IMG/VR virus record: IMGVR_UViG_3300011113_000640
Coordinates: 124,001 to 188,000 of that record
Length of the DNA: 64,000 bases
Reading direction: 5' to 3' (one strand)
Below are positions 19,755-62,984 of the stretch, in pieces. The notes beneath the pieces are model-generated. The model saw only the letters and a list, made by a program, of their open reading frames with translations. It was not told the origin of the DNA and ran no database searches. Position numbers and translations under genes: made by a program. Numbering within the stretch: the stretch's first letter is position 1; every line of letters begins with the position of its first letter.

Positions 19755-19815
19755 AAAAAAGCGCATACACTTTTACAAGTATACACGCTGGTTTGAGTAG
19801 CGTCAAGTGTATTTA
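19755..19815 (-). promoter_or_regulatory. Composite control region: late TAAATA, sigma70 promoter and overlapping terminator-like hairpin
   Basis: TAAATA at 19810-19815; TTGACG-N17-TATACT at 19806-19778; hairpin 19760-19789 followed by a T-tract. Confidence 0.7.
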
Positions 19816-19834
19816 TGACGCGGTTGTTCAGATG

Positions 19835-21631
19835 CTAGGTTTTGATCATGCCGCTTAATTCTTTTAAGCGATCCAAGAACGTGGAATCCTCGGCCACAGG
19901 TTTCATTCGGCCACTGTGTCCGTACTGTCCTTGCAGAGCTGAGGTTTCGTACATGCCACACTCTTTGAGTCCGTGAACTGGGCAACTTTCACCTGCTTCG
20001 GTCATGTTACACTTGTCACGCTCGTTGATTGGGCTGAGAACACCTGGGCTTTGTTCATCTAAGTCCTCTTCAGATTCTTCTCGGAGTTCTGGTTCATAAT
20101 CGGGTGCTGGTCTTTCTTGAGCCGGCACACCTGCGTGTTTCAAGATACTGCTCAAGTCTTGAGCATATTCTGGATAGGCCGGTTGGGCAGTGTCGGGTGG
20201 ATCTTCGGTTTGTGTGGCAGGATCTTTGACAGTTTCTTCCATTTCCTCACCTTGTTCAGGCACTTCGATGTCGGTGATCAGGTCATCTGCGGCATCACCG
20301 CCCAACATTTCTTCAACCTTGTCTTCTTCTGATTCAAGATCAGCAGGTGTCTGCTCGGGCGGATTCATTTCTGCCGTGGCATCAATGTTCAAGCTGGTTA
20401 TGACCTTCATTACATCTGGGTCTTGATCTAATTCTTGCATGCGATTGAGTATGACCTGGCGTGCATCAGCATTGGCATCACGATCGGCCAAGGCCTGCAG
20501 TTGATCAAACAACTCATCATCGCCCAGCAGGTCATACAGTTGTTCGGTGGCATTGGTGGCATCGGCACCCACTGGTAGATCCTTGCTCATCAGTTCGATC
20601 AGTTTGGCTTGTTTTTCTGGTGTGTCTGGTGTCTGCCAGGTTCCTTCCATGAGCTGGTCAGCCCAGCTTTCAAATATTGCGGCTTCTTTCATAGCGTTTT
20701 CCTGTTGTTGAATTCTAGCGATCAACGGAAGTGCATCTTCAATCCGCTGATCAATACTTTGTGTGACAAACAAGTGTTTGAGTCCTTCAATGACCACGCT
20801 TTCTTCTGACACATTCAGCGGAGTCCATGATTCAAAATACGTGTTGTAGCCGCGACGATTGGTCAGGCTCTTTAAATTGCGTTGTAGATTTTCATAGTAG
20901 GCCGTGGTTTGTTCTACCAGGGTGGCAGTGTCGCCTTCCAACAATCGGCCAGCATTGGCACGTTTGAAGCGACTCAGCACAGTGAGTTCCGTGACCATTT
21001 CAGCAATGTGTTGTCCACGCAGGTCATACGGACGACCACCGTTGCGCACATGTTCCAACATGGCCTTGCCAGCAGTGAGATTGCGGAATGGTAGTTTATA
21101 TCTTTCGCCTTCGGCGGTTTCAATAAACAAACTTTCCACGTAACGGAATCTGGCTTCGCCTTCACCCAGGTTGCGTTTGTGTTTGATCATGAGTCGGCTT
21201 TCGTTGGCGCCGGCATTCCACGAAATGTCTTTTTTGCCCTGCCATGACTCAAACAAGCCTTCTTTGATGGCAGCTTGACCTTGCATGCTGTAGCGCAGGT
21301 GATTCAAATTCTTCACACCAAAATCCAATCGATTGGTGCGCACGGCAAAATGCTTGAGTTGCTCTAAAAAGTTGAACCAGTCGGTTTTGTCGGCACCTTC
21401 CATGGTTTTGCCCACGTTGTCGGCACAGTAAACTTCCAGGGCTCCGTCATCACTAAGCATGATCACAACAGTGCCGTAGTCCTTGCCCGATTCTGCACGG
21501 AAGTCAAAACTGAATATTTCCGCTTCACTGGGATCAGCAGCGGGTTTTCCAGCGGCATCCAGGATTTCTGGATCAAAATCTCTGGTGACCAAAAGATCAA
21601 ACAGTTTGCGGGCGGGTGTTATATCTGCCAT
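19835..21631 (-). CDS. Putative head/prohead-core-associated protein
   Basis: Late promoter; many hydrophobic-x-E sites, acidic linkers and C-terminal LDRLKELSGM; adjacent to terminase. Confidence 0.5.
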   Translation of the reverse strand: MADITPARKLFDLLVTRDFDPEILDAAGKPAADPSEAEIFSFDFRAESGKDYGTVVIMLSDDGALEVYCADNVGKTMEGADKTDWFNFLEQLKHFAVRTNRLDFGVKNLNHLRYSMQGQAAIKEGLFESWQGKKDISWNAGANESRLMIKHKRNLGEGEARFRYVESLFIETAEGERYKLPFRNLTAGKAMLEHVRNGGRPYDLRGQHIAEMVTELTVLSRFKRANAGRLLEGDTATLVEQTTAYYENLQRNLKSLTNRRGYNTYFESWTPLNVSEESVVIEGLKHLFVTQSIDQRIEDALPLIARIQQQENAMKEAAIFESWADQLMEGTWQTPDTPEKQAKLIELMSKDLPVGADATNATEQLYDLLGDDELFDQLQALADRDANADARQVILNRMQELDQDPDVMKVITSLNIDATAEMNPPEQTPADLESEEDKVEEMLGGDAADDLITDIEVPEQGEEMEETVKDPATQTEDPPDTAQPAYPEYAQDLSSILKHAGVPAQERPAPDYEPELREESEEDLDEQSPGVLSPINERDKCNMTEAGESCPVHGLKECGMYETSALQGQYGHSGRMKPVAEDSTFLDRLKELSGMIKT

Positions 21632-21641
21632 AGTAGTGTAT

Positions 21642-23207
21642 TTATCGTAGTACTGCTATGAAGGGCATGGGCGGTTTTATGTCATCGCCATGGTCACGCA
21701 GTTGGTTGTTTATGGTGCTGTCATAGGTTTGTAGCAGTTGTAACATGCGCACTGCCAGCACTGTGCTCATGACAAGATCATCAGTTTCGCCGGGTTTGGC
21801 CGCATAGCCCATGCCTGAAGCCACAAAAGTTTTGAGCTCGCTGACCAGGCCCGTGCTACGGATTTTCATTCTGGCAGTTTCTACCAGCAATTTTAATTTG
21901 TTGCAGGCCGCCAGTTTGGGTTTGTTTGTGGTGTTGAATCCCTTGCGATATCTGCGCCCACTGCCCGTGCCGGGCTCACTGAGGAAATAGCCCTGTATGT
22001 TTTCTTCACCGTATTCGGCAATCGAAATCAAGGCCGCTTCGCCAATGGTGTTGTTTTCTATGCTGTAGTAGACTCGTTGAGGATCCTGCACAGTTTCGTT
22101 GATATGGGCACAGATACTGGCCAAGATACGCACCTGTTCAGGTATGGTGGTCCTGTTGTGCCGCCATTCAGCCACTTGTTCGGTGGTTTCTGCTTCAAAC
22201 ACCTGTATGGCTGCAGGATCACCTCCGGTGCCCAGGCTAGGATCCAGTGCGACCACATAGGTCCTGTCTTTTCTGGGACGCTGATACCAACGAACCTGTC
22301 CAGTTTTGTAGAGAGGTTCATGCCCTTGCAAGTCCAGGAGCTTGGCTGGAGCTATCAGAGTCTCATCATTGATAATGAATTCACACCCCATCTCTCGGCG
22401 GAAACGATCTTCACCCAGTTGCGCCCGTTGTTCAGCGGCCCAGGCTTCGTCGCGATCTGGATGTTCGTTCCAGTAACTGCGATAGGCTCTAAAGCCATTG
22501 ATGCCAAGTTCAGTGGGATTGCCGTAGGCATCCTCGCATTTGTTAGCGCCTTTCCACAACAAGGCAAACTGATCTTCATCTGAGTTGGGTGTCGACGTAA
22601 TAATGGCCTTACCACCAGTGGCCAAGGTAGGGCTGATAGATGTCCAAAACTCGCGAGCTATGGTGGGTCGCACGAACGCAAACTCGTCACAATATAACAG
22701 CGTAATACTCATACCACGACCTGTGTTTTCTGTTGTGGTGGTACTAACTATGCGACTACCATTTTCAAAATCCAAGTTGCCTTTGTTGTAACTGGTGACC
22801 CCGGCACGTATATGATCAGGGCACAGTTCGTAAGCATAACGGATACGTTGCATGATCTCCTGCGAGCCGGTGTACTTGTGTGCGGCAATCAAGATGGTTG
22901 AATCTGGACGGAACATGGCCATCCACAACAAGTAACCAGCGGCCGACGTTGACTTACCAGTTTGCCTGGGCATCATACTAATACTGTATCTGTAGTTGTG
23001 ATAGGTGTCTATCAAGCGTTTCTGATAGTCAAACGGATGATACAGCATCTTGCCCCGGGTAGGATGCTGTATGTAGAAAAAGTTGTCCATGAAATACTGC
23101 GGACCTGACACAGGATCTGCACAGGCCATGAATTCACTGAGTTGCTGGTCGGTCCAATGCTGGCGGCGATAAGGTGCTTTGACTAGGGTTGATTCAGTTT
23201 GACTCAT
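21642..23207 (-). CDS. Terminase large subunit (T4 gp17-like)
   Basis: PRQTGKS, YCDEFAF and ITSTPN; nuclease-domain motifs LDPSLGTGGD and DDLVMS. Confidence 0.95.
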   Translation of the reverse strand: MSQTESTLVKAPYRRQHWTDQQLSEFMACADPVSGPQYFMDNFFYIQHPTRGKMLYHPFDYQKRLIDTYHNYRYSISMMPRQTGKSTSAAGYLLWMAMFRPDSTILIAAHKYTGSQEIMQRIRYAYELCPDHIRAGVTSYNKGNLDFENGSRIVSTTTTENTGRGMSITLLYCDEFAFVRPTIAREFWTSISPTLATGGKAIITSTPNSDEDQFALLWKGANKCEDAYGNPTELGINGFRAYRSYWNEHPDRDEAWAAEQRAQLGEDRFRREMGCEFIINDETLIAPAKLLDLQGHEPLYKTGQVRWYQRPRKDRTYVVALDPSLGTGGDPAAIQVFEAETTEQVAEWRHNRTTIPEQVRILASICAHINETVQDPQRVYYSIENNTIGEAALISIAEYGEENIQGYFLSEPGTGSGRRYRKGFNTTNKPKLAACNKLKLLVETARMKIRSTGLVSELKTFVASGMGYAAKPGETDDLVMSTVLAVRMLQLLQTYDSTINNQLRDHGDDIKPPMPFIAVLR

Positions 23208-24331
23208 AGTAAACTACTTATTTCGGGCCATAGTTCGGCAAACTTTCCACACTGATCCGGATGATAGTGTGACTCTATCTGTTGTATGTGATCAGCCAAG
23301 GCCGGGCGCAGATCCTGTTGGCAAGGATTTCGTAGATTACCGATTACCTGTGTAAGGAATCCGCGTTCACTGGCTGATAAGTCAAGTCTGTTCAAGACCT
23401 TTGACACTTCTTTTTCTGCCGCCTGTTGTATGTCAGTGCCCAGTTTCGTAGGATCAAGATATTCGTGTTCAAAAACGTTCTGCCAGTGTATTTCTAGCTC
23501 TTGTTGTTTGACCCATTCTACAAATTCGCACAACCTGGTGGCATTGTACACATTATAAACAGCATGTATGCCCACTTGATGCCCAGGTAGTCTGGTCAAG
23601 ATTCCTAAATTTTGTTGCATCAACGACCAGTCGCCGCCGTGCCTGACATATTCATATCGTGGACCTATGTTATCAAAACTCACATTCCAGCCCACATTAT
23701 GTCGATCAGACAACAAGCGGAAAATGCGGTTTGAGGCTAGATCCACACTGAGATTTGTTATAAGGTTTACCTGTGCTGATGCAGGAACTACAGCCAAAAT
23801 TGATTCGTTTTCTTTCAGCAACAAAGGTTCGCCGCCTATCAAGGCCACTTGACTGATGCTGTCTTGATATTGACTCAGATACTCACATACCTGATGTATA
23901 TAAGGTCTGGTTCCCGAGCGAACCGGAATGCCTTTTAGGTCGGCCCATTTGGAGCTGCTTTTTTCACCGCAGTAGTTGCAACTGAGATTGCAGGTAGTGT
24001 TCCAACGCACATCTATCAGCACAGGTCTATGCTCCATGTTGTCCACTGCTGTAGCATCAAATCCTGGATTCAATTGGTTGTGCCAGTCACGTTCACTGCG
24101 TCCATAGCCGTCGGCCTGTATGCAGTTTTGACAAAACTCAGGGTGCATGCGACCTTGCCGCAGAGTTTGTCGTATTTCCTGCATGACAGGGCCGTGCAGG
24201 ATCTGTTCAATGTTGTGCTCGTTGAGATTGCCCAACATGTTGGGATCTCCTGCACAGCAGGTTTTGACATCACCTCTGGGATTGATATGCAAGCCTCGCC
24301 AAGGAGCTGCACAGTAAACTTTTGACATCAA
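23204..24331 (-). CDS. Radical SAM protein with N-terminal SPASM/twitch-like domain
   Basis: CAAPW...GDVKTCC...CQNC, then CNLSCNYC and GGEP. Confidence 0.85.
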   Translation of the reverse strand: MMSKVYCAAPWRGLHINPRGDVKTCCAGDPNMLGNLNEHNIEQILHGPVMQEIRQTLRQGRMHPEFCQNCIQADGYGRSERDWHNQLNPGFDATAVDNMEHRPVLIDVRWNTTCNLSCNYCGEKSSSKWADLKGIPVRSGTRPYIHQVCEYLSQYQDSISQVALIGGEPLLLKENESILAVVPASAQVNLITNLSVDLASNRIFRLLSDRHNVGWNVSFDNIGPRYEYVRHGGDWSLMQQNLGILTRLPGHQVGIHAVYNVYNATRLCEFVEWVKQQELEIHWQNVFEHEYLDPTKLGTDIQQAAEKEVSKVLNRLDLSASERGFLTQVIGNLRNPCQQDLRPALADHIQQIESHYHPDQCGKFAELWPEISSLL

Positions 24332-24526
24332 CTACTTATAGGGATTTTCGCCAGTAAGGCCAGGTTTGGCAAACCATAACTTGAACCAAGGTTCGGTGCC
24401 GGGTTGGATGTTTTTGTTACGTTGGAAACGGGCCACGTGTGTGCCTGTTCGAGATATGTTGCTGCCCGCAAGAGGTTTTAACTTGGACTTAGGATAAACA
24501 CCCTGGCCAAACTCACTGAATCGCAC
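24332..24526 (-). CDS. Small hypothetical protein (possible head-internal protein)
   Basis: Probable GTG start giving MRFSEF...; C-terminal PGTEPWFKLWF. Confidence 0.5.
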   Translation of the reverse strand: MRFSEFGQGVYPKSKLKPLAGSNISRTGTHVARFQRNKNIQPGTEPWFKLWFAKPGLTGENPYK

Positions 24527-24528
24527 AA

Positions 24529-24969
24529 TCAATTACACCACGACTGCTTGGCGTCGCCGTAGTATTCTCTGGCAAAGCCATTGCGGATCAGTTCAGCACG
24601 TAAACTAACACCATCCAGGATCATGTCGCCCAGCACACGACCACCAAACTTGTCCCACGAGTAAAGAATCACTTGATGTTTTTTAGTTGATGCCACAGCT
24701 TTTTTGGTAAACTCCGTGGCAGCCTGACCACGGGCATCTTCCGACGGACATTGGGCGCGATGTCCTTTTTCGGGTGTGTCCACACCAAACACACGCACAG
24801 CCAGTTCAGGCTTGAGTGGTTGTGGAAGAAATGGTGCGGCAATCACAATGGTATCTCCGTCCGTGACACGCACGATCTGTGTGTCATAAGTGGCAGAATT
24901 TTTGGGTATTTTGCCTTGAGCAAATGCCAATGCAGGCACGGTCAATAATAACAATAGGAGTTTTTTCAT
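24529..24969 (-). CDS. Thermonuclease (SNase-like) with signal peptide
   Basis: MKKLLLLLL..ALAFA signal; DGDT, VRVFGVDTPE, DKFGGRVLG and GFAREY motifs. Confidence 0.9.
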   Translation of the reverse strand: MKKLLLLLLTVPALAFAQGKIPKNSATYDTQIVRVTDGDTIVIAAPFLPQPLKPELAVRVFGVDTPEKGHRAQCPSEDARGQAATEFTKKAVASTKKHQVILYSWDKFGGRVLGDMILDGVSLRAELIRNGFAREYYGDAKQSWCN

Positions 24970-24984
24970 TTAAATTTTTTCCGA

Positions 24985-26601
24985 TTAATTTGTAAGTTCT
25001 TCCCAGCCCAGTTTCCACAATAGGTCAGCGTTGTTGGCTGTGTAGGCCACTGCCAGAGTCAAGGTGCTGGGTGTTCCGGTCGCTGTTCTCCATAGTTGCA
25101 GGCGACGTTTGATGTCTTCGCTGATCTCTACTTCGTCTCGGCTGCTACTCAGTCCAGCATAGACCACAGTACCGTCAGTGATCACATTGCTGTGTATGGC
25201 GGTTTGAACAACTGATCCGGCCACGTTGCTGAAACTGGCAGTAAAGGTGGCATTTTCAATCAATTGAAATTGTCCGTATCTAACATCAATTAGCAACAGG
25301 TCCAGTTGAGCCGGTACAACTACTGCGTCAGGATAGGCTGGATTTAGTCGTATACTGCACAAGGCTGTGACAGTGTTACCTGCCGCAACTCGTGTTGGAA
25401 CTGTGCCGTTAGTCACATAACCAATCTTGGTGCTGGGGGTATAGCCGCCCTCGCTTATCACAGTGCTACAAATCTGTTTCATGGTGCTGGCACCCGAAGT
25501 AGCACCAGTGTTAGTTATTTCATATCGAGGATTTAAGGTAGCAGTGGTCATGTATACCGTGGTGTTACCCGGCTGATTGGCATGTTGGAATGTGTGGCAC
25601 ACGATGAACACACCGTTGATCACAAATCCTGTTCTAACATTGCCTACACCCAGCCACTCAACGTCACACCAAAAAATCTGTGTCAGCGTAGGATCTAAAA
25701 CTATGCCCGATGGATTGCCGGCCAACAAGGTGTTGCCGTTCCATGAGGCTTGCGGAATTCTTTCTTCAACTATGCCGCCGGTGACACTGCTGCGAATCAC
25801 TAGATTCAGGGTAGTGCCCACTGCTTCAAAGTAGATGCCGTTGTCGGCTGTGAAGTAGCCCACACGCTGGCGACAGTTGGCTTTGAGTGTGGCCATGGCA
25901 AAGGTATTCATGATCAACAAGCTCTTGCCGGGTTGATAGGTCTGAACTGTTTTGCTTTGTCTGATCACACTGGATCCACTGGTGGCAGATACATTTAGAT
26001 TGAACGAACTTTCATTGGCCACATACACCACATTGCCGCCTGTGGCTGTGATGTTTGAAAACTGATCACCGTCTATGTAACGATTTTGGCTGTCAAACAA
26101 GGTAAAGGGATTACTGACACGGAGTCGGCCAAACGCATCAAGATTGGTGCCACCTATGGTAGTTGACACATTGCCACCAGTAATATTAGCGTTAACTGTA
26201 CCGGTGATGCCCACGTTGCCTGTAATTGGTGGCAAAGCAGTGATTCCGGCTATGTTCCCAGTGATGCCTACATTGCCGGACGTTATGGCAACATTGACGT
26301 TGCCACTAACCACCCATGGACTTGTACCTTGAAGCACAGTGACGTTGCCAGTAATCACATCCACATTTACATTGCCGCCAATCGGCAGATAGGGTGTGGT
26401 TATATTTCCTAAACTACCAACAGCCGTGATATGGTTGTCGACTTCACCCGGAATGGTCACATTACCGGTGAGTGTGATGTTGGCGCCTTCGGTTAATCCT
26501 GTGCGCACAAAAACTTGGCCAGTGGTACTATTCAGCTCCAGAGCCTGGGTGATATTACGTAGATACCACGGTGCTACTTCAGTTGGTTCAGGATAGGCCA
26601 T
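24985..26601 (-). CDS. Putative virion structural protein
   Basis: G/N/V/T-rich repeats followed by DAFGRLRVS...YQPGKS...EWLGVG domain; late promoter. Confidence 0.6.
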   Translation of the reverse strand: MAYPEPTEVAPWYLRNITQALELNSTTGQVFVRTGLTEGANITLTGNVTIPGEVDNHITAVGSLGNITTPYLPIGGNVNVDVITGNVTVLQGTSPWVVSGNVNVAITSGNVGITGNIAGITALPPITGNVGITGTVNANITGGNVSTTIGGTNLDAFGRLRVSNPFTLFDSQNRYIDGDQFSNITATGGNVVYVANESSFNLNVSATSGSSVIRQSKTVQTYQPGKSLLIMNTFAMATLKANCRQRVGYFTADNGIYFEAVGTTLNLVIRSSVTGGIVEERIPQASWNGNTLLAGNPSGIVLDPTLTQIFWCDVEWLGVGNVRTGFVINGVFIVCHTFQHANQPGNTTVYMTTATLNPRYEITNTGATSGASTMKQICSTVISEGGYTPSTKIGYVTNGTVPTRVAAGNTVTALCSIRLNPAYPDAVVVPAQLDLLLIDVRYGQFQLIENATFTASFSNVAGSVVQTAIHSNVITDGTVVYAGLSSSRDEVEISEDIKRRLQLWRTATGTPSTLTLAVAYTANNADLLWKLGWEELTN

Positions 26602-26614
26602 AATATACTATTTA

Positions 26615-26914
26615 TTAGGGCTGGTAGTACACAATTTCACCTGTGGCAGGATCAAAATACAGCTGGTTGAGTCCAGCAGTGCTATTCACCACACGCACAT
26701 TGCCCAAAAAGGTGTTGGCTCCGGTAACCTGTATGATTTTTGTGAGTGCTCCAGTGGCATTGCCAATGTAGATTTCATTGGTGTTGATGTTCACGGTCAT
26801 TTCGGCAGGTCTGGCGTTGCCGTTGTAGTTTGTAACGGTTTCCTGGGCATTGTCCTTCATCACGGTACGGCTTATACCCGTGAGATCTTCATAGGGTGGT
26901 GGCGGATTGGCCAT
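26615..26914 (-). CDS. Small fibre-like structural protein
   Basis: 99 aa; the segment RPAEMTVNINTNEIYIGN resembles fibre N-terminal modules. Confidence 0.5.
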   Translation of the reverse strand: MANPPPPYEDLTGISRTVMKDNAQETVTNYNGNARPAEMTVNINTNEIYIGNATGALTKIIQVTGANTFLGNVRVVNSTAGLNQLYFDPATGEIVYYQP

Positions 26915-27306
26915 TATCTAGGATATCCTCGGAAAGGTCGGATAGGACTGACTGTGTCCACTGACTTGGGTTCTTCACTGGCAGCCGAGCTGACCAGCTT
27001 TTTGCCCCCGGGTGTCTTGGTCATTTTTAGCGCCAGGTCGATCACTGTATCCACATTGGCATCAAAACCCGATATCACACCATGTTCGCCAAAGGCTGTT
27101 TCTGCTTCCCAGGGCGGCATAAAGTGATCTACTTGATCTTGATCTTTGCCGCGGTCACTTCTGGCACGGGCCATGGCCACACCAAATCTGTAGTTTCTGT
27201 AAGGATCTGCGGCACTGAGGCCAGGCAGGACATAGGTATAACGCAGGGGTTCCGAGATCTCGGGCGGAAGCTCTCGTTGTTCACGGATGAACTCTCGGGC
27301 TCTCAT
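26914..27306 (-). CDS. MRAREF-family paralog 1 (putative head-internal protein)
   Basis: Begins MRAREFIRE; contains YRFGVAMA; ends TVSPIRPFRGY. Confidence 0.6.
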   Translation of the reverse strand: MRAREFIREQRELPPEISEPLRYTYVLPGLSAADPYRNYRFGVAMARARSDRGKDQDQVDHFMPPWEAETAFGEHGVISGFDANVDTVIDLALKMTKTPGGKKLVSSAASEEPKSVDTVSPIRPFRGYPR

Positions 27307-27701
27307 CGGCCGTATCCCCCAAATCCTGTCACAGGACTGGTCTTGTTGACCCAGTCTGCTTCGGTGCTACGATTGTCTGTGAGCTTCTTGACTTCTCCAG
27401 CTCCCACTGATTTGGCAGCTGCGTTGATGATTTTTAAGTCGGCATCACTGTAAGTGGCCAAGAGTGGATCTCCAGCAAAAGCACCTGCTGGAGGTGTGGG
27501 ATAATCAGGTGCACCGGCCATGGCTATACCAAAACGCCATTGGGTGTAAGGACTGCCACCTTGTTTGTTTGAGCTGATGTCAGGCATGCTGATGGCGCCT
27601 TTGATGGCCGAGTGTTGACTCTTGGCCAGTTTCCGTCCGTTGGCTGGAACGTCAGCAGCACTGCCAAATTTTGCCTCAGCTACAAATTCTCTTGCTCTCA
27701 T
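27303..27701 (-). CDS. MRAREF-family paralog 2
   Basis: Start reassigned to 27701 (ATGA overlap): MRAREFVAE; WRFGIAMA; ends KTSPVTGFGGY. Confidence 0.6.
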   Translation of the reverse strand: MRAREFVAEAKFGSAADVPANGRKLAKSQHSAIKGAISMPDISSNKQGGSPYTQWRFGIAMAGAPDYPTPPAGAFAGDPLLATYSDADLKIINAAAKSVGAGEVKKLTDNRSTEADWVNKTSPVTGFGGYGR

Positions 27702-28576
27702 TCCATGTCCTGTAAATGCATGTGACCAAACGGTGGATTGCTCTTGACGTTTTGCCATAATTCTCTGTTGCTCATTATCTCCACCCAGACATCTGTGGTG
27801 GGACGATTCAAACTCCAAAAATCAAACTTCATGTGACTGCTCACAGGGCGGCAATACAATGTGCGTTCTTTGGGCACACACAGTTGTTGGCTTGTGGTGC
27901 GCATTTTCTTACCGTCGGTGCTGGTCCTAAGTATATTTAGTTGCGGATCATTGATGTAGACTTGGCACATGCCATCCACTAGATCCTGTGGTGTGCTGGC
28001 TGACTTTACCACGGCTTCTGCCAACAACAAGCGGCTTTCACTGCTGATACGGTCCAGGGTTTTACGTTTATCTCTTGGACTGCGTTGCATACCGGCTGTG
28101 GGCATCCAAATGCCGTGATTGGTCCTGGCCACTGTTTGATCTTGGGGTATCTTTTTGGCTTTAAATCTGTAAGGACGTTTTCCGTCCCAGTTGCTGGCTT
28201 CAATCAAGAACATGTTGTCCTGATCAAATACCATGGTGCAACCACACAGGCGTTGTTGGACTAAAAATTTTGCCGCTGCCTCGGCCGTAGGCAAGGTCAA
28301 GGCTTCGGCAATCATCTGGCCATCAGGGCTGGTTTTGACCCGGCCAGATTCAACTTCGGTTTCATCATTGCCCACATCCAGGCTGGTGTTCAAGATACTT
28401 ACACCTCGGCTGTTGATGCCTTCTTTGTAGCCAGTGATTTCGTCATGCATCATCATGCGATCGGCGCTTTCGGATTCGCTTTCGATGAAGTCTAATACAG
28501 GTATGTAGGTTCGGTCTCGATTTTTGGCACCGGCCCATCCAATACCGTCAAAGTATTTGGCTACGATCACGCACAT
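27698..28576 (-). CDS. Ntn-hydrolase (Cys nucleophile; NRDE/C45-like)
   Basis: Cys at position 2; KNRDR, EGINSRG and RTNHG motifs. Confidence 0.7.
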   Translation of the reverse strand: MCVIVAKYFDGIGWAGAKNRDRTYIPVLDFIESESESADRMMMHDEITGYKEGINSRGVSILNTSLDVGNDETEVESGRVKTSPDGQMIAEALTLPTAEAAAKFLVQQRLCGCTMVFDQDNMFLIEASNWDGKRPYRFKAKKIPQDQTVARTNHGIWMPTAGMQRSPRDKRKTLDRISSESRLLLAEAVVKSASTPQDLVDGMCQVYINDPQLNILRTSTDGKKMRTTSQQLCVPKERTLYCRPVSSHMKFDFWSLNRPTTDVWVEIMSNRELWQNVKSNPPFGHMHLQDME

Positions 28577-28577
28577 T

Positions 28578-28958
28578 TTATTTTGCGTAGCCCCGGAAAC
28601 CTTTTACTGGGCTTGTAGTATTCACATATTCAGCCTCAAGACTGCCGGGCAACACATGATCTCGTGGATTCATGCCCAGTTTTTTCATGATGGCTTTGAG
28701 TTTTTTCCTATCATATTCAGTGTAGGCACTGAACACCGGAAGGTTTCCAAAGAATCCAATGTCATCAACCTTGCCTATTTGGTCTGGGTCCATGCCGGCC
28801 AGGCTCGACACACGATAGAAATCATAATAGCGGCCCCAATACACATCGCCATTTCCACCCGGACCAATTATGCCAGGATGTGCCTGATCAAATTCGTGAT
28901 TGGCAGTGGATCTGGTTCCGCCCCTACTAGCTTCGGTGACGAATTCTCGGGCACGCAC
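28578..28958 (-). CDS. MRAREF-family paralog 3
   Basis: GTG start, MRAREFVTE; ends TTSPVKGFRGY. Confidence 0.6.
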   Translation of the reverse strand: MRAREFVTEASRGGTRSTANHEFDQAHPGIIGPGGNGDVYWGRYYDFYRVSSLAGMDPDQIGKVDDIGFFGNLPVFSAYTEYDRKKLKAIMKKLGMNPRDHVLPGSLEAEYVNTTSPVKGFRGYAK

Positions 28959-28960
28959 TG

Positions 28961-29254
28961 TTATTGTCCTGCGGTGTTGAACACACTATATTGTGCAGAA
29001 CTTTGTGTGCCTAATTCCAATGCTGTAAATGGTGAGCCTACTATTGTAACTTTGTTTCCGGCACCTGAATAACCTTCAAACACTGTGTTGGCTGGAATCG
29101 TGATTGGTGCAGTGTAGATATTGCCAATGGCTGCGGCGGTTCCCAAGGCTGTGGCATAGGCTTGATAAGTCACTGCGTTGGCAGCCGTGGAGATCTGTAG
29201 TTTGTCTGTGTAAACAGTTGTGTTAGCTAGTGTGGTGTATACGTTTGCGGCCAT
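28961..29254 (-). CDS. Small Ala/Thr-rich structural protein
   Basis: 97 aa with SD AGGA; composition typical of virion proteins. Confidence 0.55.
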   Translation of the reverse strand: MAANVYTTLANTTVYTDKLQISTAANAVTYQAYATALGTAAAIGNIYTAPITIPANTVFEGYSGAGNKVTIVGSPFTALELGTQSSAQYSVFNTAGQ

Positions 29255-29269
29255 TTTATTTTCCTTTGT

Positions 29270-30007
29270 TTACCATGCACGACACGACCAATATCGCGCC
29301 TTGGTCTTTGGTCCCGGGTTGTCACAGTTGTGTCTTGCTCTAAAACTCTTTCTACGAGCCGGATTGGATTTTTTGATCTTCATGGTCTTTTGACCCAATC
29401 TCTTGGCAGTATTTCCTCCATGACCAAAGTTCACTTTCTTTACATTGCCGGTCTTGGGATCTTTCACATACACTTTTGATTTTTTCACATCGCCAGCCAT
29501 GGGTTTGTTGAGAGTGACTTCACGGCCTTGATACTTGGCTTCATCAGTGGCCAAGCGTTGTGCGGCATCAATAGCGGCTTCTTTGCCTGCTACCACAGCA
29601 GCATCTTGATCGTCTTTCAACTGCTCTGTCTCGCCAGTGGCTGTACGCCAAAAGTCTTCGATCCAGTCTTCATCACCATAGCGATCTTTGAACTCTTCCA
29701 GGCTCATGCGTAGTGCAGCCGTATACATTTCTTTTTTCATGGCGCCTTCGCCTACCAAGGTGCCATAGCCCATGGTCTCCATGACTATGTTGCTGTCACC
29801 CTCGTCGGTGTCTTCCAAGGTAGCCCATTCAGCCAGGGCTGCATTGATCTCGGGCGTACTATCTAACAGTATGCAATCGTCTGCTACTTCAATGATGTAA
29901 GTTTCACAAACAACTTCATCAGGAAGTTCAAAGGCAAAGATGTCACCTGCTGCAGGTGTGTTCATCCACTGTTCACTTTCCGCGAGATAGTCTTTTAGCG
30001 ATTTCAT
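29270..30007 (-). CDS. Putative head-internal protein with basic C-terminal domain
   Basis: MKSLKDYLAE N-terminus; acidic middle; C-terminal RRKSFRARHNC...KARYWSCRAW. Confidence 0.6.
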   Translation of the reverse strand: MKSLKDYLAESEQWMNTPAAGDIFAFELPDEVVCETYIIEVADDCILLDSTPEINAALAEWATLEDTDEGDSNIVMETMGYGTLVGEGAMKKEMYTAALRMSLEEFKDRYGDEDWIEDFWRTATGETEQLKDDQDAAVVAGKEAAIDAAQRLATDEAKYQGREVTLNKPMAGDVKKSKVYVKDPKTGNVKKVNFGHGGNTAKRLGQKTMKIKKSNPARRKSFRARHNCDNPGPKTKARYWSCRAW

Positions 30008-31899
30008 TGTGCTTTGTAGTTTTGATATAAACGGAACAGGTTGCGCTCAAGTTCCACTGACTCTTCCATTGAAACTTGGCGACGTAATTGGCTTGCAATC
30101 ACAGGAACTGTTGTTTGTCCAGTTGATTTGGGACCATTGAGGCCGCCTGAATACTGCATGGCATTGTCGCTGGTTTCTGTGTTTGTGGGCCAGTCTGGGC
30201 TGTTCTCATCTAATTCTTCACAGCCACAGGGTGCTTTGCCACAGGTGCCACAACTTTCTGCGTTGTCGTGACTGCCCATGCCAGCCATCTTTAACAATGC
30301 GGCCAAGGCTTCGGCATCTTCGCCGTCGGCACTGACAGTGATGTTCTTGGATGGATTACCATCAGGACCAGTGTTCATGTTCACACTTACATTCATGCCT
30401 TCTGTGAGTGCCTGCCGGAACTTTTGGTCCAGGCTTTCATACACACCTTTGCCAAACTGCATGCCACCTTTGGATTTACCACCAGTGGGTGCTGTGGCCA
30501 CTGATCCGGCTACAGTTGTTTCTTCGACTTCGTCTTTCTTCTTGCCTTTGGCTTGTTTTGCTGCTTGTTTCATGGGTTCAGTCTTGTTGCCATCTTTGTC
30601 AAGATCCAGGAAGTCAGGTTTGCCGGCTTCTTTGACTTTCTTTGGCAAACCTTTTTCTTTGGTTGCGGCAAACTTGCGTAGTTCACCCTTGGGCATCCGG
30701 GCCATTTCTTTCGAAGCACCACGCAACTCGCTTTTGGGAATCTCGCCCTTTTGTGCGGCATGTGCTATGCCAGCGGCTCTGCGTTGTGCTTGACTGACGG
30801 CTTTCTCTGCCACAGGTTCCGCATCATTTTTTTGTTGATGCATGTATTGATTGCTGCTGTTGATGTAGTCCAAGGCCTTGGTAATCTTGCTTTGTACCCA
30901 CTCTGGCAGATTTTCGTCGTCACCAAGAATGCTGTGCAGTTCTTTGGCGGCCATGGCCAAACTTTCTAAATCGTCCTTGGCCATTTCGCCTTCGCGGTCG
31001 TATTCACCTTTGTTGATCAAGCTCACACTTTCAATGTCTTCCGAACTCATGTTTGATGGGCGGGTCATCATGACACCATCGGTGTCGAGGTCTTCTTCAG
31101 TCTTCTCTTTTCTAGTGCCTTTGTGCTTCCAGGCACCCTTGGTAGTGCGCTCAGGACCCTTGGCAGGACCTTTTGGACGACCTTTCTTCTTGGGTTGATC
31201 ACTAACTTCTGCGTCGTCTTTTTCTTCAGGTTCTTCTTTTCTTGTGTAACGCTTGCTGTAGCCTGTGTCTTTGACATCATATCTTGGATGCTCGTCTTTG
31301 GTGGCAAACATTGATTTGGCCACTTCAGGATCAAATGCTGTGCCAGCACTGCGAGATTTTTTGGTTTCTTTTTTCTCTTCGATGTTGCTGGTGTCTTTGT
31401 ATTTTTTGCCATCCAGTTCAAACTCGCCACCCCGGGGTGTGCTCTTGAGCTTGGCTGTGAATGCGTTGCCTTCGTCGGCCATTTCTTCGTCCATCTTATC
31501 ATGCTTGGCACGTATTTTGGCCATGGTCTCTTTGCTGGCACCTTCACGACCGGCCTTCTGCAGGGCCTTCATGCCAGTCTCGCCGTATTTTTTCTTGCCC
31601 AGGTATGCTTGCAATGCACTCTCATCCATGTCGCCAGCACTTTCCTTGGCACGCAGTTTGGCCAACACAGCGCCGGCCACTTTCTCACCGCGCTCTTTGC
31701 TGCCATAACGCTCACCTGCACTCTTGGCAATCTTGGAGAACATCTTGCCAGGCTTGCCAATGTCTTTGCCCGCACGAGCCTTCTTGGCTGAATAGTCTCT
31801 AGTGCTGGCTTCGGCCACAGCTGATTGAGCGCTCTCATTGAGGTCTTGTTTCTTGGCCAAGTCAGCCAACTTCTTGTTTAGGTCGTAAAAAAATGTCAT
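30004..31899 (-). CDS. Modular Lys/Glu-rich putative head-internal polyprotein (contains DUF3008-like and DxDxDG modules)
   Basis: Basic modules separated by hydrophobic-x-E sites; KAVSQAQRRAAG...KGLPKKV resembles DUF3008; also DLDKDGN. Confidence 0.55.
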   Translation of the reverse strand: MTFFYDLNKKLADLAKKQDLNESAQSAVAEASTRDYSAKKARAGKDIGKPGKMFSKIAKSAGERYGSKERGEKVAGAVLAKLRAKESAGDMDESALQAYLGKKKYGETGMKALQKAGREGASKETMAKIRAKHDKMDEEMADEGNAFTAKLKSTPRGGEFELDGKKYKDTSNIEEKKETKKSRSAGTAFDPEVAKSMFATKDEHPRYDVKDTGYSKRYTRKEEPEEKDDAEVSDQPKKKGRPKGPAKGPERTTKGAWKHKGTRKEKTEEDLDTDGVMMTRPSNMSSEDIESVSLINKGEYDREGEMAKDDLESLAMAAKELHSILGDDENLPEWVQSKITKALDYINSSNQYMHQQKNDAEPVAEKAVSQAQRRAAGIAHAAQKGEIPKSELRGASKEMARMPKGELRKFAATKEKGLPKKVKEAGKPDFLDLDKDGNKTEPMKQAAKQAKGKKKDEVEETTVAGSVATAPTGGKSKGGMQFGKGVYESLDQKFRQALTEGMNVSVNMNTGPDGNPSKNITVSADGEDAEALAALLKMAGMGSHDNAESCGTCGKAPCGCEELDENSPDWPTNTETSDNAMQYSGGLNGPKSTGQTTVPVIASQLRRQVSMEESVELERNLFRLYQNYKAQ

Positions 31900-31903
31900 G
31901 CTG

Positions 31904-32512
31904 TTATCCTCTTGGGTTGGCGCCGGTGGCTGGGCGTGGTGGTCGCTTGACCTTGGTCATAGGGCTTGAAGTGCCCATGGGTAAATCATTTGTGGTCTTG
32001 GCTGGTGGTGTCTTGCCTCCAGCTACAGTGAAATCACTGCGATAAGCATTATTCAATACTCCATGCTCACCGTAGGGTGCTGAATAATCTTTGCTGAGTG
32101 CTTTCTGCTCTGCGTCAGGAGCAGGATAGTCTGTGTCTGTGAGCAAGTCTTTGTTTTGATCCGCGATCTTTTCACGCTCGACGTCCATGCTGTCTTCGTG
32201 TGGTGTGGTCAACATGATGATTCTATTGGGATCCAAGAACAACAACTGTGCGATCTGTTTGATCTGTGGTTCAATGGCTGGATAGCGGAATTCACAATCC
32301 ATACTGGTCACTGAGTCATTGCTGTGCTTGGGGAAGTCAGCGGGCTTGAGTTGCACTGGCGTGGTTTTTGGCGAACCAATTTTCACAGGATCAAACTGTT
32401 TGAGTTTTTCAGTCAGCATCTTGACAAAGTCAGGAGCAACGTCACCCACGATTTTGATCCTATAGCGGTAGGTTCTTTCGCTTTCGGCCAGGTATTCTTG
32501 AAATTTTTTCAT
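31904..32512 (-). CDS. Putative head-internal protein
   Basis: N-terminus MKKFQEYLAE resembles the T4 capsid targeting sequence; TAAATA at 32531-32536. Confidence 0.6.
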   Translation of the reverse strand: MKKFQEYLAESERTYRYRIKIVGDVAPDFVKMLTEKLKQFDPVKIGSPKTTPVQLKPADFPKHSNDSVTSMDCEFRYPAIEPQIKQIAQLLFLDPNRIIMLTTPHEDSMDVEREKIADQNKDLLTDTDYPAPDAEQKALSKDYSAPYGEHGVLNNAYRSDFTVAGGKTPPAKTTNDLPMGTSSPMTKVKRPPRPATGANPRG

Positions 32513-32533
32513 ATTTGTATCCCTATATGATAT

Positions 32534-33031
32534 TTATGCTTTTGTATCTTTTTGGTCTCTAGAGGCCATTAGACGCTCTAGCAAATCGTTGCGACTCAAG
32601 ATCTGCCCGTGTGCTGTTTCCACTGCTTCATCTCCGGTCTTGCTGGCACGATCCTGATCCATTTTGAGCTTTTTCAGTTGCAGATCAACCATTTTGAGTT
32701 TTTTGTTTAGCTTGGCCGTTTTGGCTGTGAGCGCATGGCCCAGCATGGTGCCAGCCACTGCAAATATTTCAGCACTGTATCTGCTGTCAACTTGCATGCC
32801 CAAGTCCATGAGATCATCAAAGGTTTCCTGGGCTTTGGCAGCCAGGGCATCCATTTCAGTGTCTGACGCATCCAGGCCTCGCACAGCCGGCAGGGCTTGG
32901 TCGATCTTGTCTATGGTAGCGTCGATTTCTTTGAGTGCGATTTGTGTGGTAGGAATAGATTCGGGTTCGGTGGTTTCGCTGTTGCAACCACTGGGCGGCA
33001 AATCAAAAAGTTCTTCCAGTTTTCGGGTCAT
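32534..33031 (-). CDS. Probable terminase small subunit (gp16-like)
   Basis: Helical pattern LMDLGMQVDSRYSAEIFAVAGTML...DLQLKKLK...SRNDLL recalls T4-like gp16. Confidence 0.5.
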   Translation of the reverse strand: MTRKLEELFDLPPSGCNSETTEPESIPTTQIALKEIDATIDKIDQALPAVRGLDASDTEMDALAAKAQETFDDLMDLGMQVDSRYSAEIFAVAGTMLGHALTAKTAKLNKKLKMVDLQLKKLKMDQDRASKTGDEAVETAHGQILSRNDLLERLMASRDQKDTKA

Positions 33032-33034
33032 GAC

Positions 33035-33478
33035 CTATTTACCGGTTTTTTTGCTGCCTTGATGGAATATTTGGTCTTCGTTTATGACTCGGAATGTGAG
33101 TCCGTTGCGACGTGCCCATTTGGTTGCAGAGTCCCACTTGGCGTAGTTCACTGCCACAATAGCACGGTCTCGGTCGGTCATTTTACTTTCAATTAGACTT
33201 TGTTTTTTGGGCTTGATTTCGATCAATTCAGCACGTGTGGTATTGTCACGTCCACGGTAAGTCACAAAAAAATCTGGCACATACATGCTCTGCTTGCCAG
33301 TGATGGGATTTCTATAAGGTATGCTAATGCTTTCACTGGCCCATTGCACAATGTTGTCATTGCTGTCAAGAAACATCATGAAAGTTAGCTCCCAGCCCGA
33401 TCTGTATCTGGGTGTGCCTTTGCCCACATATTTGGCGGGATTTTTACAGGTGTAGATGCCTTGGCGAAAATTTGGCAT
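33035..33478 (-). CDS. Head completion nuclease (T4 gp4-like, TnsA-type fold)
   Basis: YRSGWE, WASE, YVPDF and EIKP motifs. Confidence 0.85.
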   Translation of the reverse strand: MPNFRQGIYTCKNPAKYVGKGTPRYRSGWELTFMMFLDSNDNIVQWASESISIPYRNPITGKQSMYVPDFFVTYRGRDNTTRAELIEIKPKKQSLIESKMTDRDRAIVAVNYAKWDSATKWARRNGLTFRVINEDQIFHQGSKKTGK

Positions 33479-35689: not shown

Positions 35690-35736
35690 GGTTATGTTCC
35701 TGTTTTGATTTATTTATGTACCAAATCTACCCTTGA

Positions 35737-48008: not shown

Positions 48009-48074
48009 GAGTTTAAGTATACTATAAGTTGATTTAACGGTCAATCTGGAATTATGAACATAAATATCTATACT

Positions 48075-53597: not shown

Positions 53598-53617
53598 TTT
53601 AAGTTCCTATATGCTAT

Positions 53618-55615
53618 TTATGTTACTATGGCACGGTCTGTTACTCTGCGCCAATTTGTGCCATCAGCAAAGGCCGGCACTGGGCCGCCGGTTTCGTTGG
53701 TCACGTATATCATGGCCCCAGCTATCGCGGCACTGGGCAACGTATTGGCGGTATAACTGGGCAAAACAAGCTGATCTGGGTAGATCAAGCCCGATGTAAC
53801 CAGCGTGCCAAGATCTGCTTCACTGTCCACAGGGGCGGTTATCAGGCCAAGATCTTCCGATACCGTAACTGGTTCGGTCACTGCGCCAAAATCTGCTCCA
53901 TCTACAAAGAGTTCGCTACCGCCCTGGGTACCAATGGTTATGGTGTCTGTGGCGGGATCAATCACAATGCTGATACCAGTGCCAGCTGTCAAGGTCAGGG
54001 TATCAGCTATGCTGTCTGCCACAGCACTGTTGCCTCCGGTGACTGTGACGTTGCTGAACACATTGATACCAGATAGGCCAGCACCGTTGCCCAGGATATT
54101 ACCACCACTAATGTTGCCAGTTGCTGAAATCAGTCCACCAGTCAGAACATTACCGCCAGTGACATTACCAGTGGCGCTCAACAATCCTGTAACAAATTCA
54201 CCAGTGGTGGAAAATACAACAACGTTACTGACTCCACCAATTGAAATGTTGGCATTGCCGCCCGATGTGCCAATGTTGGCTTCGCTGGTGCCATTAAATA
54301 TTCTGCTGGCACTGAATCCAGTGGCAAAATAGATGTTGGCCAACAAATAATTGCCAGCAATGTTGCCCGTGGCACTGACGTTGCCTGCTGTGGTTAGATT
54401 GGCACCTGCGACGTCGCCAGTAACACTGGCACTTGAACCTGTGATTACACCGCCCACTGTTGATGCAGCAGTTTGAGTGCCAGTGACGCTGGTAGAACTA
54501 CCAGTTATTACTCCACCTATTGTAGAGGCAGATGTAGATGTGCCAGTTACACTGACACTGCTTCCAGTAATCACACCGCCCACTGTGCTGGCTGTTGCTA
54601 CAGTTCCTGTGACACTAATATTGGTGCCTGTGTAATTAGTAGATGAAATATTGCCGCTAGTAATGTTGCCAGTGACGCTGAGCAATCCAGTTATAAATTG
54701 ACCGGTAGTGGCAAACACTGCCACATTCGACGTGCCACCAACGGATACATTGACATTGCCGCCACTGGCTCCAATATTGGCTTCACTGGTGCCATTGAAT
54801 ATCCTTGATGAAAATATTCCCGATGCACAGGCCACGTTGCCTAAAAAGTAATTGGCCGTGACATTGCCGGTAGCCGACACAAGACCAGAAGTCAGGATAT
54901 TACCACCTGTGATATTACCACTGGTACTAAAAGCAGCTCCAGTATTGCCGGTCAATACGTTAGCTCCATTGACTGTGAGTACGGAACCAGTGGTGGCTAT
55001 CGACACATCCCCAATATACAATGTGCTGTTAGACAGCCATAAATCTTTCCATCTTAGGGCAGTATTTCCTAAACTATAAGTGACGTTGGCCGAAGGGAAC
55101 AGGTTACCAGTAAACGTCACTGCTGTGTTACCAACGCTGACAACGTTGGCTGTGCCAGCTGAACTTATTGTGACATTGGCATTTGAATTGACCACCACAT
55201 TTGACGTGCCGCCCGATATGGAGTTGGCCATGTAGTTTTGCGTAAACGTCAGGGCCGTGGTGTTGATCGTAATGGGATCATCAGTGATCAGTTTCCATTG
55301 CGTGTCGGCGTAGATGGCGCCTTCTGTGACCATGACAATCATGCCGGCTTCAATTTCACCGTTTTCGTTGCCGTCGCTGGTCCTGTCCCAGGTACCATTG
55401 GCACCCGATCCCAAGGTGGTCACAAGGTAAAGTCCGTTTTGGCTACCTGTGGTTTGTCCAGTGACCAAGATCCTGTCACCCTTGACTAGATTTACACTGT
55501 CAACCACACTGGGCGCACCACCACTCAAATTGATATTGGTAGCAGTAACTACTCGCGTGGACTGTTTGTAGTCTAAGTTGAATATCTGCGCGGCACGCGG
55601 TTTGGTTAAGCCCAT
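53618..55615 (-). CDS. Tail fibre protein
   Basis: GDRILV...NGLY domain, G/N/T/S repeats and C-terminal FADGTNWRR. Confidence 0.75.
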   Translation of the reverse strand: MGLTKPRAAQIFNLDYKQSTRVVTATNINLSGGAPSVVDSVNLVKGDRILVTGQTTGSQNGLYLVTTLGSGANGTWDRTSDGNENGEIEAGMIVMVTEGAIYADTQWKLITDDPITINTTALTFTQNYMANSISGGTSNVVVNSNANVTISSAGTANVVSVGNTAVTFTGNLFPSANVTYSLGNTALRWKDLWLSNSTLYIGDVSIATTGSVLTVNGANVLTGNTGAAFSTSGNITGGNILTSGLVSATGNVTANYFLGNVACASGIFSSRIFNGTSEANIGASGGNVNVSVGGTSNVAVFATTGQFITGLLSVTGNITSGNISSTNYTGTNISVTGTVATASTVGGVITGSSVSVTGTSTSASTIGGVITGSSTSVTGTQTAASTVGGVITGSSASVTGDVAGANLTTAGNVSATGNIAGNYLLANIYFATGFSASRIFNGTSEANIGTSGGNANISIGGVSNVVVFSTTGEFVTGLLSATGNVTGGNVLTGGLISATGNISGGNILGNGAGLSGINVFSNVTVTGGNSAVADSIADTLTLTAGTGISIVIDPATDTITIGTQGGSELFVDGADFGAVTEPVTVSEDLGLITAPVDSEADLGTLVTSGLIYPDQLVLPSYTANTLPSAAIAGAMIYVTNETGGPVPAFADGTNWRRVTDRAIVT

Positions 55616-62925: not shown

Positions 62926-62984
62926 GACAAGTATTTATGGCAAGGCAAATATTTTAGGTCAGTACATACAAATTAAATAGAACC

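Follow-up and report, generated by a model that had tools for sequence, protein, structure and literature searches.

Candidate capsid-targeted internal proteins encoded beside the large terminase gene of an uncultured freshwater jumbo phage

Which of the genes beside the terminase of a large uncultured phage might specify proteins that are packed into its head? The question is raised by a 64,000-nucleotide stretch of DNA (the window), bases 124001–188000 of the 320,541-bp IMG/VR virus record IMGVR_UViG_3300011113_000640 (ca. 93% complete), in which a preliminary description marked positions 19835–32512 as a block of at least six head-cargo proteins. These were recognized by N-termini resembling the capsid targeting sequence (CTS) MKTYQEFIAE of T4 internal proteins (IPs), which Mullaney and Black reportedly described in 1996. 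We consider that five products of the block, g202, g245, g126, g132 and g130 (the number in these names is the length in amino acids), are probably capsid-targeted, protease-trimmed internal head proteins. Such proteins are the first of a phage to meet the host, and the T4 set includes an anti-restriction factor; beyond the T-even and phiKZ-like phages almost none are recognizable from sequence.

The six N-termini and the three motifs (LKELSGM, LKHAGV and LKMAGM) from which that description set out are all present, the former on the minus strand, as are all genes of the block (Table 1). Five genes, those named above, fit the pattern M-[KR]-x(2-3)-[EDQK]-[FY]-[ILVM]-x-E. A genome scan for such starts had been proposed; run with this strict motif over every possible start of the 320,541-bp genome, it returned the same five genes, all in the block, and none elsewhere. 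Inside proteins the pattern occurs 10 times per 101,523 residues, and about 0.04 leader starts are expected at the ca. 400 N-termini against the five seen (Poisson P(≥5) ~8e-10). Since g126, g132 and g130 are full-length paralogues (the MRAxEF family), the five genes represent three independent leader lineages. Proteins g202 and g245 have their first 13 residues in common and nothing else.

The proposed count of at least six cargo proteins thus comes down to five with a full leader. The sixth candidate, g64 (MRFSEF), was rejected: its orthologues start MRF[QKT]EFGKG, GQG stands where [ILV]xE is expected, there is no Glu at position 9 and no [LIV]xE anywhere in the protein, and its likeness to the MRAxEF start is only partial. 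Nor is the whole span cargo. The leader genes lie inside it, together with the genes for TerL, a radical SAM enzyme and a secreted nuclease, which are not cargo.

The large terminase places the phage. Its closest matches are the terminases of the Pseudomonas PA5oct group [3e-180, tblastn], those of Phosso, Atu_ph07 and GAP32 being less similar, and PA5oct is the nearest cultured relative of this 320-kb freshwater jumbo phage. At the nucleotide level megablast found no match of the block to cultured phages. The sequencing runs that contain the block are freshwater, lake and viral metagenomes, and g202 has 3232 homologue matches in public metagenomes, the matches listed being all 85–100% identical and unnamed. 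More than 3000 close metagenome relatives, taken with the nature of these runs, point to a clade of freshwater jumbo phages that is abundant and uncultured. Eighty related IMG/VR loci, fetched with g202 as query, formed the comparison set.

Throughout these loci the leaders are held with little change. In all 80 the g202 protein starts MK-x-F-x-x-Y-L-x-E-S, with M1, K2, F4, Y7, L8 and E10 unchanging, and the g245-type protein, where present, starts MK-x-L-[KR]-[DE]-Y-[ILM]-x-E with M1, K2, L4, Y7 and E10 invariant. Genes starting M-R-A-x-E-F-[ILV]-x-E number two to five per locus; R2, A3, F6 and E9 of this leader never change, and E5 is replaced by Asp in one of 99 genes. The Glu that ends the leader is present in 99/99 MRAxEF, 79/79 g202 and 17/17 g245 genes of the 80 contigs, and is also kept in more distant g202 homologues from other jumbo-phage contigs. 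Among 30 g202 homologues, with identities down to 21%, six of the 13 invariant residues fall within the first ten, and these are the same six positions. The codons behind these residues vary: Arg is specified by four synonymous codons, Ala by four, Leu by six and Ser by five (two to six for each invariant residue), and 92 of the 99 MRAxEF genes differ from one another in their first 45 nt. Residues that are fixed while their codons vary indicate selection at the level of the peptide rather than of DNA or RNA. Nucleotide-level conservation of the leader was also considered and is ruled out by this codon variation.

The surroundings of these leaders are anything but constant. Among the relatives the DNA from the putative small terminase gene to terL is hyperplastic, with g245, g292, g99, g538, the nuclease gene, g64 and the radical SAM gene coming and going; where a g245-type gene is present its product has 163–281 residues. 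Orthologues of the MRAxEF proteins fall to 26–37% identity, versus 80–96% for TerL.

The leader also occurs on bodies of quite different descent. Within the clade a 97-residue, basic, Cys-rich DUF6321 protein starts MRA[AS]EFIVE. In other large viral contigs, which encode a second subgroup of the MRAxEF family, a leader of the form MK[IV]x[ED][IL][IL]xE is carried by at least 12 unrelated families, including SLT lytic transglycosylase [1e-16], GH19 hydrolase [1.5e-12], NTase-like, DUF6267 and metallopeptidase-like proteins, and the g202 homologues of these contigs start MKSFTEYLTE. The complete 382-kb genome among them has six leader starts versus 0.19 expected. The leader is a modular tag which is not bound to one fold. 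Paralogy had been considered as its sole explanation, and is ruled out because unrelated bodies bear it.

A candidate processing enzyme is encoded nearby. A T4-type head module lies just outside the window and comprises the portal, a protein in the gp67 position, an acidic protein, a protease, the scaffold and a gp23-type capsid protein. The protease (G000 191429–192067) matches PF03420 [Peptidase S77] (92.2 bits, above the cut-off); it shares 37% identity with T4 gp21, and the HP and SSRG motifs of the two align. It starts MARYLRE-H, and at the point corresponding to the cleavage site of T4 gp23 the capsid protein reads KKYLRE-N, a likely maturation site. The ORF in the gp67 position (G000 193044–193394, minus strand), which separates the portal gene from that of the acidic core protein, contains an internal start giving MILNEIYE; it is probably shorter than its longest reading and homologous to PA5oct gp150 (MKINDIITE...). 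Taken together, the leaders and the protease, capsid and gp67-position sites place [FY/hydrophobic]-[LIV]-x-E at every expected substrate of the protease.

The gp21 protease of T4 follows an (L/I)xE rule. Proteins which persist beside such an enzyme should avoid [LIV]xE, and an abundance of it is expected in those destined for degradation. In the bodies of 94 MRAxEF proteins we counted 19 such sites versus 78.6 ± 8.2 expected, in 102 representatives clustered at 50% identity 37 versus 95.9 ± 8.7, and in the second lineage 6 versus 40.2. The ratios are 0.15–0.38 with z-scores of −6 to −8, which overstate independence in view of the kinship among the sequences, a concern that the 50% representatives and the second lineage lessen. 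No depletion is seen over the whole proteome of the phage (1107 versus 947), and two proteins are enriched: the 365-residue scaffold (24 versus 11.5, z 4.4) and g598 (20 versus 12.0, z 2.7). Six control tripeptides ([LIV]xD, [LIV]xQ, [LIV]xK, [AGS]xE, [FYWM]xE and Ex[LIV]) gave ratios of 0.9–1.2, and milder dips were seen for [LIV]E (0.77–0.90) and [LIV]xxE (0.59–0.78) versus 0.24–0.38 for [LIV]xE.

The sole [LIV]xE of g126 and of g132 is at residue 9, and T4 IPI, IPII and IPIII have exactly one each, at the known cleavage positions 19, 10 and 10. The NTase-like and DUF6267 families are depleted as well. For close relatives of g202 the result (78 versus 121.5 expected) is less clear than for MRAxEF. 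Protein g245 has seven sites (10, 35, 40, 60, 77, 87 and 105) and none in its basic C-terminal domain; since all fall in the first 105 residues, the acidic half may be degraded.

The MRAxEF proteins merit separate description. In an alignment of 36 members, with pairwise identities down to 20%, 14 columns are invariant: M1, R2, A3, E5, F6, E9, R40, S110, E112, S120, P121, F125, G127 and Y128. Six of the 14 are in the first nine residues, and this clustering at the ends marks both termini as the conserved parts of the family. At the C-terminal end an invariant S-x-E is followed by SP[VI]xxFxGYx[RK], a tail found nowhere else in the genome. The tail may act as a further signal, as another cleavage site or as a motif for binding. 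Searched with a family profile, 1.84 billion cluster representatives yielded 653 MRAxEF clusters at 50% identity, most of them stand-alone proteins of 115–135 residues matching from residue 1, and most of the best 150 matches start M[RK]x x[ED][FILV][ILVM]xE. The leader thereby marks a large protein family which is unnamed in the databases. In the second subgroup, whose proteins end in SPVAKPKRNKYGV, M1, E9 and the SxE...SP motif are invariant; an S77 protease was present in all five of its large contigs that were tested (175–383 kb). A tblastn search of 50,697 cultured phage records with g126 gave no match even at E 1, and on this evidence the family is without a cultured member. Metagenome contigs which encode two distant members are only about 1 kb long and give no gene context.

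In several metagenomic proteins (P0187, P0205, P0207, P0255 and P0201) the family domain is preceded in frame by another domain, in some cases cytidylyltransferase-like, which places the leader inside the protein, in a conserved junction ...KYAN[KR][IV][IL]REMRA[KR]EF...; other proteins, P0132 and P0179 among them, have two family domains each. These fusions may be polyproteins that are cut at the internal leader, or artefacts of gene calling. With a cytidylyltransferase fusion as query, tblastn matched cyanophages over the transferase part only.

Structure prediction gave folds and no function. The AlphaFold2 model of g130 (pLDDT 69.7) has a ferredoxin-like core from about residue 22 preceded by the leader as a short helix of low confidence, and Foldseek found nothing below E 1 for it in the PDB. 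In the g202 model (pLDDT 61) the leader is again a separate short helix before a ferredoxin-like core. A wide structure search with VIA-align returned generic ferredoxin-like proteins only (Z ≤5.5 for g130 and ≤7.6 for g202, in the common range). No functional match was obtained for either predicted fold, and no functional annotation from Pfam or PHROG.

Two large charged proteins of the block, g598 and g631, have no leader and contain instead the LKxAG-type motifs listed in Table 1. In g631 the motif LLK[MLA]AG[LIM] lies about 90 residues before the C-terminus and is present in every complete orthologue of the related loci. Its gene occupies the slot of PA5oct gp203, a virion protein detected by mass spectrometry which carries ILRLAGV, ISKLAGI and ILKNAGL; the motif is also found in Phosso gp410. 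Protein g598 has an internal ILKHAGV and a C-terminal RLKELSGMIKT, and its orthologues conserve ILKxAGV and a terminal FLDRLKELSGM, the longer ones having extra copies. The scaffolds end similarly: DLKRLAGL here (G000 190320–191417), DIKRLAGLN in the 382-kb genome and ELRRLAGIK in PA5oct, all of the form [DE][IL][KR]RLAG[IL]. The C-termini of P22-type scaffolds commonly bind coat protein. By analogy only, the motifs of g598 and g631, which copy the scaffold tail, may be a second, scaffold-like incorporation signal for these leaderless proteins.

The leaders, their conservation and modularity, the protease gene and the depletion and enrichment of sites would be accounted for by a route of the following kind. 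The genes would probably be expressed late. Each 9–10-residue leader, M-[KR]-x-x-(x)-[ED]-[FY]-[ILV]-x-E, would dock its protein on the scaffolding core during assembly of the shell, and the gp21-type serine protease would then cut after the leader Glu. The same enzyme would degrade the scaffold at its 24 sites, and probably also g598 and the acidic N-terminal half of g245. The mature bodies, purged of [LIV]xE, would survive and stay in the head with the DNA, from where any ejection into the host would take place.

The closest cultured phage provides a point of reference. PA5oct has the same gene order around the terminase, and its gp202 is the homologue of g202 (28% identity over 152 residues from residue 1) in the same slot by the terminase genes. 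Together with gp203, gp205 and gp206 it is annotated as a virion protein detected by electrospray ionization tandem mass spectrometry [MK797984]. So is gp150, which has 74 residues, lies in the gp67 position and bears a leader-type start (MKINDIITE). Lood et al. 2020 (PMC7318152) report on PA5oct virion proteins and do not address proteolytic processing.

Several points weigh against packaging and trimming. The phage is uncultured and the case is built from sequence, and the (L/I)xE rule, drawn from the T4 literature and from T4 sequences, is carried over by analogy to the present protease. The three MRAREF genes are paralogous, and their common start within the window could be simple descent. 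Pooled leader-bearing proteins other than the MRAxEF family show no depletion of [LIV]xE (ratio 0.97). Glu10 is absent from PA5oct gp202 (MKSFRDYYDAS) and from Phosso gp408 (MKNFYEYLSS); the N-terminus of the g202 family may be an ancient structural element, and its cleavage may not be universal. A census of leader starts in PA5oct gave 3 and 3 hits versus 2 and 2 for reversed-pattern controls; without such an excess the CTS system is not general to the PA5oct genus. PA5oct gp271, which is leader-like (MKIKEIILE), is not among the virion proteins detected by mass spectrometry. The annotated start of this gene (L191:882–1268) is probably five codons too early, MKIKEIILE being the likely start. 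A complex prediction for the protease and g126 scored 0.00 with the partner poorly folded, which is evidence neither way. The proposal of packaged, trimmed head proteins, as first put forward, is well supported, if indirectly, by the invariant leaders, the unrelated bodies that carry them, the gp21-type protease, the depletion of its sites and the occurrence of gp202 in the PA5oct virion, and is weakened by the missing Glu10 in the two cultured homologues.

Among other explanations, the one that survives best concerns function only and is nested in the packaging model: the proteins might be packaged and processed without being injected, serving in the head as DNA-associated proteins, charge neutralizers or assembly helpers, and their divergence would reflect weak constraint. 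We hold this possible rather than probable. It agrees with the small, generic ferredoxin-like cores predicted for these proteins, which bear no enzymatic signature, with the very basic end domain of g245, a widespread stand-alone small phage protein, and with an invariant tail, as if a contact within the particle were conserved; in T4 about 1000 internal protein molecules are embedded in the head DNA (PMC3012670). It agrees less well with the mature proteins not being uniformly basic (pI 6.7–9.4), and with the varying copy number and the divergence of orthologues relative to TerL, a pattern seen also in the T-even IP loci with their diverse anti-restriction proteins (PMC3012670).

It is unlikely that the N-terminus is an uncleaved structural or oligomerization element whose likeness to the T4 CTS is convergent, with neither targeting nor cleavage taking place there. 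The PA5oct and Phosso homologues do keep MKxFxxY without the Glu, and the models predict a short helix at residues 3–10. Against this stand the invariance of the presumed P1 Glu in all three sets of genes and in the distant g202 homologues, the occurrence of the leader on unrelated folds, the low model confidence of the leader with structural matches beginning after it, and the fact that the bodies are depleted of [LIV]xE specifically, which such an element leaves unexplained.

That the common start is a translation-initiation context, a recombination box or a signal for some other destination is very improbable, for although Lys or Arg after Met with A-rich codons is common at efficient starts, and a common sequence could promote exchange in a hyperplastic block, the synonymous codons and distinct 45-nt starts described above, a charged, amphipathic leader that is no secretion signal (the signal peptide of the nuclease looks quite different) and the unexplained depletion of protease sites all speak otherwise.

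If the proteins are indeed packaged and trimmed, what they do is a further question. The preliminary description suggested injected anti-defence or takeover effectors. This is speculation by analogy, compatible with the variability of the locus and with the T-even precedent (PMC3012670); an arms-race role fits the rapid divergence and the variation in copy number, and a role inside the head, structural or DNA-associated, is no less possible. A bolder and rather doubtful extension is that the MRAxEF family and the other tagged proteins of freshwater jumbo phages with a T4-type core make up a large, fast-evolving, head-packaged arsenal delivered with the DNA. Its members would be readable from a leader code, M-[KR]-x-x-[ED]-[FILV]-[ILV]-x-E, together with the purging of [LIV]xE, and a further, independent code for incorporation would be [IL][KR]xxAG[ILMV], found in g598, g631 and PA5oct gp203. 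If this were true, ejected effectors could be predicted genome-wide in uncultured phages. The depletion test is in itself cheap and general for phages with a sequence-specific prohead protease, survivors having the leader site only and degraded proteins being enriched. Should the leader be sufficient for targeting, it would offer a ready-made tag with which to load foreign proteins into large capsids.

The remaining genes of the block are listed with the leader genes in Table 1.

Table 1. Genes, motifs and promoter-like boxes in and around the candidate cargo block (positions are those of the window)
Feature	Position (strand)	Start codon	Description	Database match or homology
TnsA-like protein	33035–33478 (-)		147 aa; neighbour of putative small terminase	TnsA-like endonuclease N-terminal domain, 2e-18
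Putative small terminase	32534–33031 (-)		assigned by position and PA5oct gp201 homology only	phrog_16202, function not assigned
g202	31904–32512 (-)	ATG at 32512	202 aa; leader MKKFQEYLAE (codons 32483–32512); present throughout clade	phrog_14802, virion structural protein
g631	30004–31899 (-)		631 aa; highly charged; no CTS-type leader	DUF3008 PF11450, 2.5e-15
LLKMAGM in g631	30277–30297
g245	29270–30007 (-)	ATG at 30007	245 aa; leader MKSLKDYLAE; acidic N-terminal half, basic C-terminal domain ~153–245	phrog_7595 (residues 153–245)
g97	28961–29254 (-)		97 aa; no leader; conserved neighbour preceding MRAxEF array	no Pfam or PHROG match
g126	28578–28958 (-)	GTG at 28958	MRAxEF paralogue; leader MRAREFVTE; C-terminal tail SPVKGFRGYAK
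g292	27698–28576 (-)		292 aa; Met-Cys start; no leader; inserted in MRAxEF array	no Pfam or PHROG match
g132	27303–27701 (-)	ATG at 27701	132 aa; MRAxEF paralogue; leader MRAREFVAE; ATGA overlap with upstream stop
g130	26914–27306 (-)	ATG at 27306	130 aa; MRAxEF paralogue; leader MRAREFIRE; ATGA overlap with upstream stop
g99	26615–26914 (-)		99 aa; no leader; in many relatives	weak Mtd_N-like hint, 6.7e-4, below curated cut-off
g538	24985–26601 (-)		virion structural protein	phrog_1645, 2.9e-95
Nuclease	24529–24969 (-)		staphylococcal-nuclease-like; no leader; N-terminal signal peptide, hydrophobic start MKKLLLLLLTVPALAFA	PF00565, 6.5e-11
g64	24332–24526 (-)	GTG at 24526	64 aa; basic; starts MRFSEFGQG	no family match
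Radical SAM / SPASM enzyme	23204–24331 (-)		not cargo	PF13186, 1.2e-11; PF04055
TerL (large terminase)	21642–23207 (-)		identity certain	52.7% identity to PA5oct group (tblastn)
g598	19835–21631 (-)		598 aa; very acidic	phrog_13484, virion structural protein; N-terminal domain homologous to PA5oct gp206
ILKHAGV in g598	20126–20146
LKELSGM in g598	19847–19867
CATAAATA boxes	32531–32538, 19810–19817, 35711–35718, 53615–53622, 62932–62939 (-); 48059–48066 (+)

The block had been described as lying around and between two terminase genes. One of these is beyond doubt; the other is a small terminase candidate, for which we found no Pfam terminase match and no similarity to T4 gp16. The PA5oct counterpart of the TnsA-like protein encoded next to it is gp200, called a head completion protein. 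In many phages the C-terminal domain of g245 is found as a small protein by itself, and tblastn matches to pelagiphages, roseophages and others cover that domain only. Where present, g292 lies between the g126-type and g132-type paralogues in most relatives; it is possibly a C45/CBAH-like Ntn-hydrolase, a lead given only by Atlas feature neighbours which carry PF03417 and PF02275. Other large proteins take the place of g538 in some relatives, and other proteins with a signal peptide (ca. 240–270 residues) that of the nuclease. The radical SAM gene, directly upstream of terL, is found in most but not all relatives and is duplicated in one.

An octanucleotide, CATAAATA, which resembles a late promoter, lies 19 nt 5' of the g202 ATG. 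Six copies occur in the window versus 2.5 expected, a number reached in 4 of 100 shuffles, and several are shortly upstream of start codons. The canonical T4 late promoter TATAAATA is not enriched in comparison (1 match versus 1.4 expected), and CATAAATA may be the version of it used by this clade.

How does this locus compare with known systems? The phiKZ-like giants SPN3US and 201phi2-1 load many accessory head proteins by means of N-terminal propeptides which a prohead protease cuts after Glu (PMC5694885, PMC10052503), and like the present block they have paralogous families with conserved N-termini. They belong to a different lineage, and their propeptides are mostly of 100–250 residues and end in A-x-E or S-x-E, whereas those proposed here have 9–10 residues and end in [ILV]-x-E. 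PA5oct, the nearest cultured relative, is similar in having counterparts of g631 (gp203) and g598 (gp206) with LxxAG motifs, and in the scaffold terminus ELRRLAGIK. It differs in having a gp202 without Glu10, no MRAxEF family and no excess of leader-type starts.

The propeptides of the T4 core proteins offer another parallel. Activation of T4 gp21 involves the loss of nine N-terminal residues, and gp24 loses a 10-residue peptide, gp21 being the enzyme that removes both (PMC9958956); we read these as MNEPQLLIE and MAKINELLRE. With that of gp67 (MEGLIE) they end in [hydrophobic]-[ILV]-x-E at the extreme N-terminus, and the gp24 propeptide is nearly the same as MKINELLTE, a leader from related contigs (compare also MARYLRE of the protease and MILNEIYE in the gp67 position). 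Unlike the accessory, variable proteins described here, gp21, gp24 and gp67 are core assembly proteins of all T4-like phages.

The nearest likeness is to the T4 internal proteins. The T4 leader MKTYQEFIAE, which we read from NC_000866 at the starts of IPII and IPIII, is identical to that of g202 in six of ten residues and to that of g245 in four, with conservative changes, and its core, [ED]-F-[ILV]-x-E, recurs in the MRAxEF 9-mer. Both systems place an N-terminal leader of about ten residues, ending [IL]-x-E, on otherwise unrelated small proteins, encode a gp21-type protease, have bodies free of the protease site and vary at the locus between related phages. No body homology was detected by BLASTP between the block proteins and IPI, IPII or IPIII, only 11 leader residues aligning (all E ≥0.08). 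The T-even internal proteins are themselves mutually unrelated, and body homology is no defining feature of the class; their loci encode diverse anti-restriction proteins with only the CTS in common (PMC3012670). The present system differs from that of T4 in its dominant leader, the 9-mer MRAxEF[ILV]xE, in the invariant C-terminal tail, and in where the genes lie: between terminase genes, in a jumbo phage of 320 kb, and not in T-even ip loci. In T4 targeting, cleavage and injection are proven, whereas here the first two are predicted from sequence features. The kind of system is thus known from T4; new are its occurrence in an uncultured and abundant clade of jumbo phages, the MRAxEF leader, the large unnamed family that bears it, the C-terminal tail and the depletion signature.

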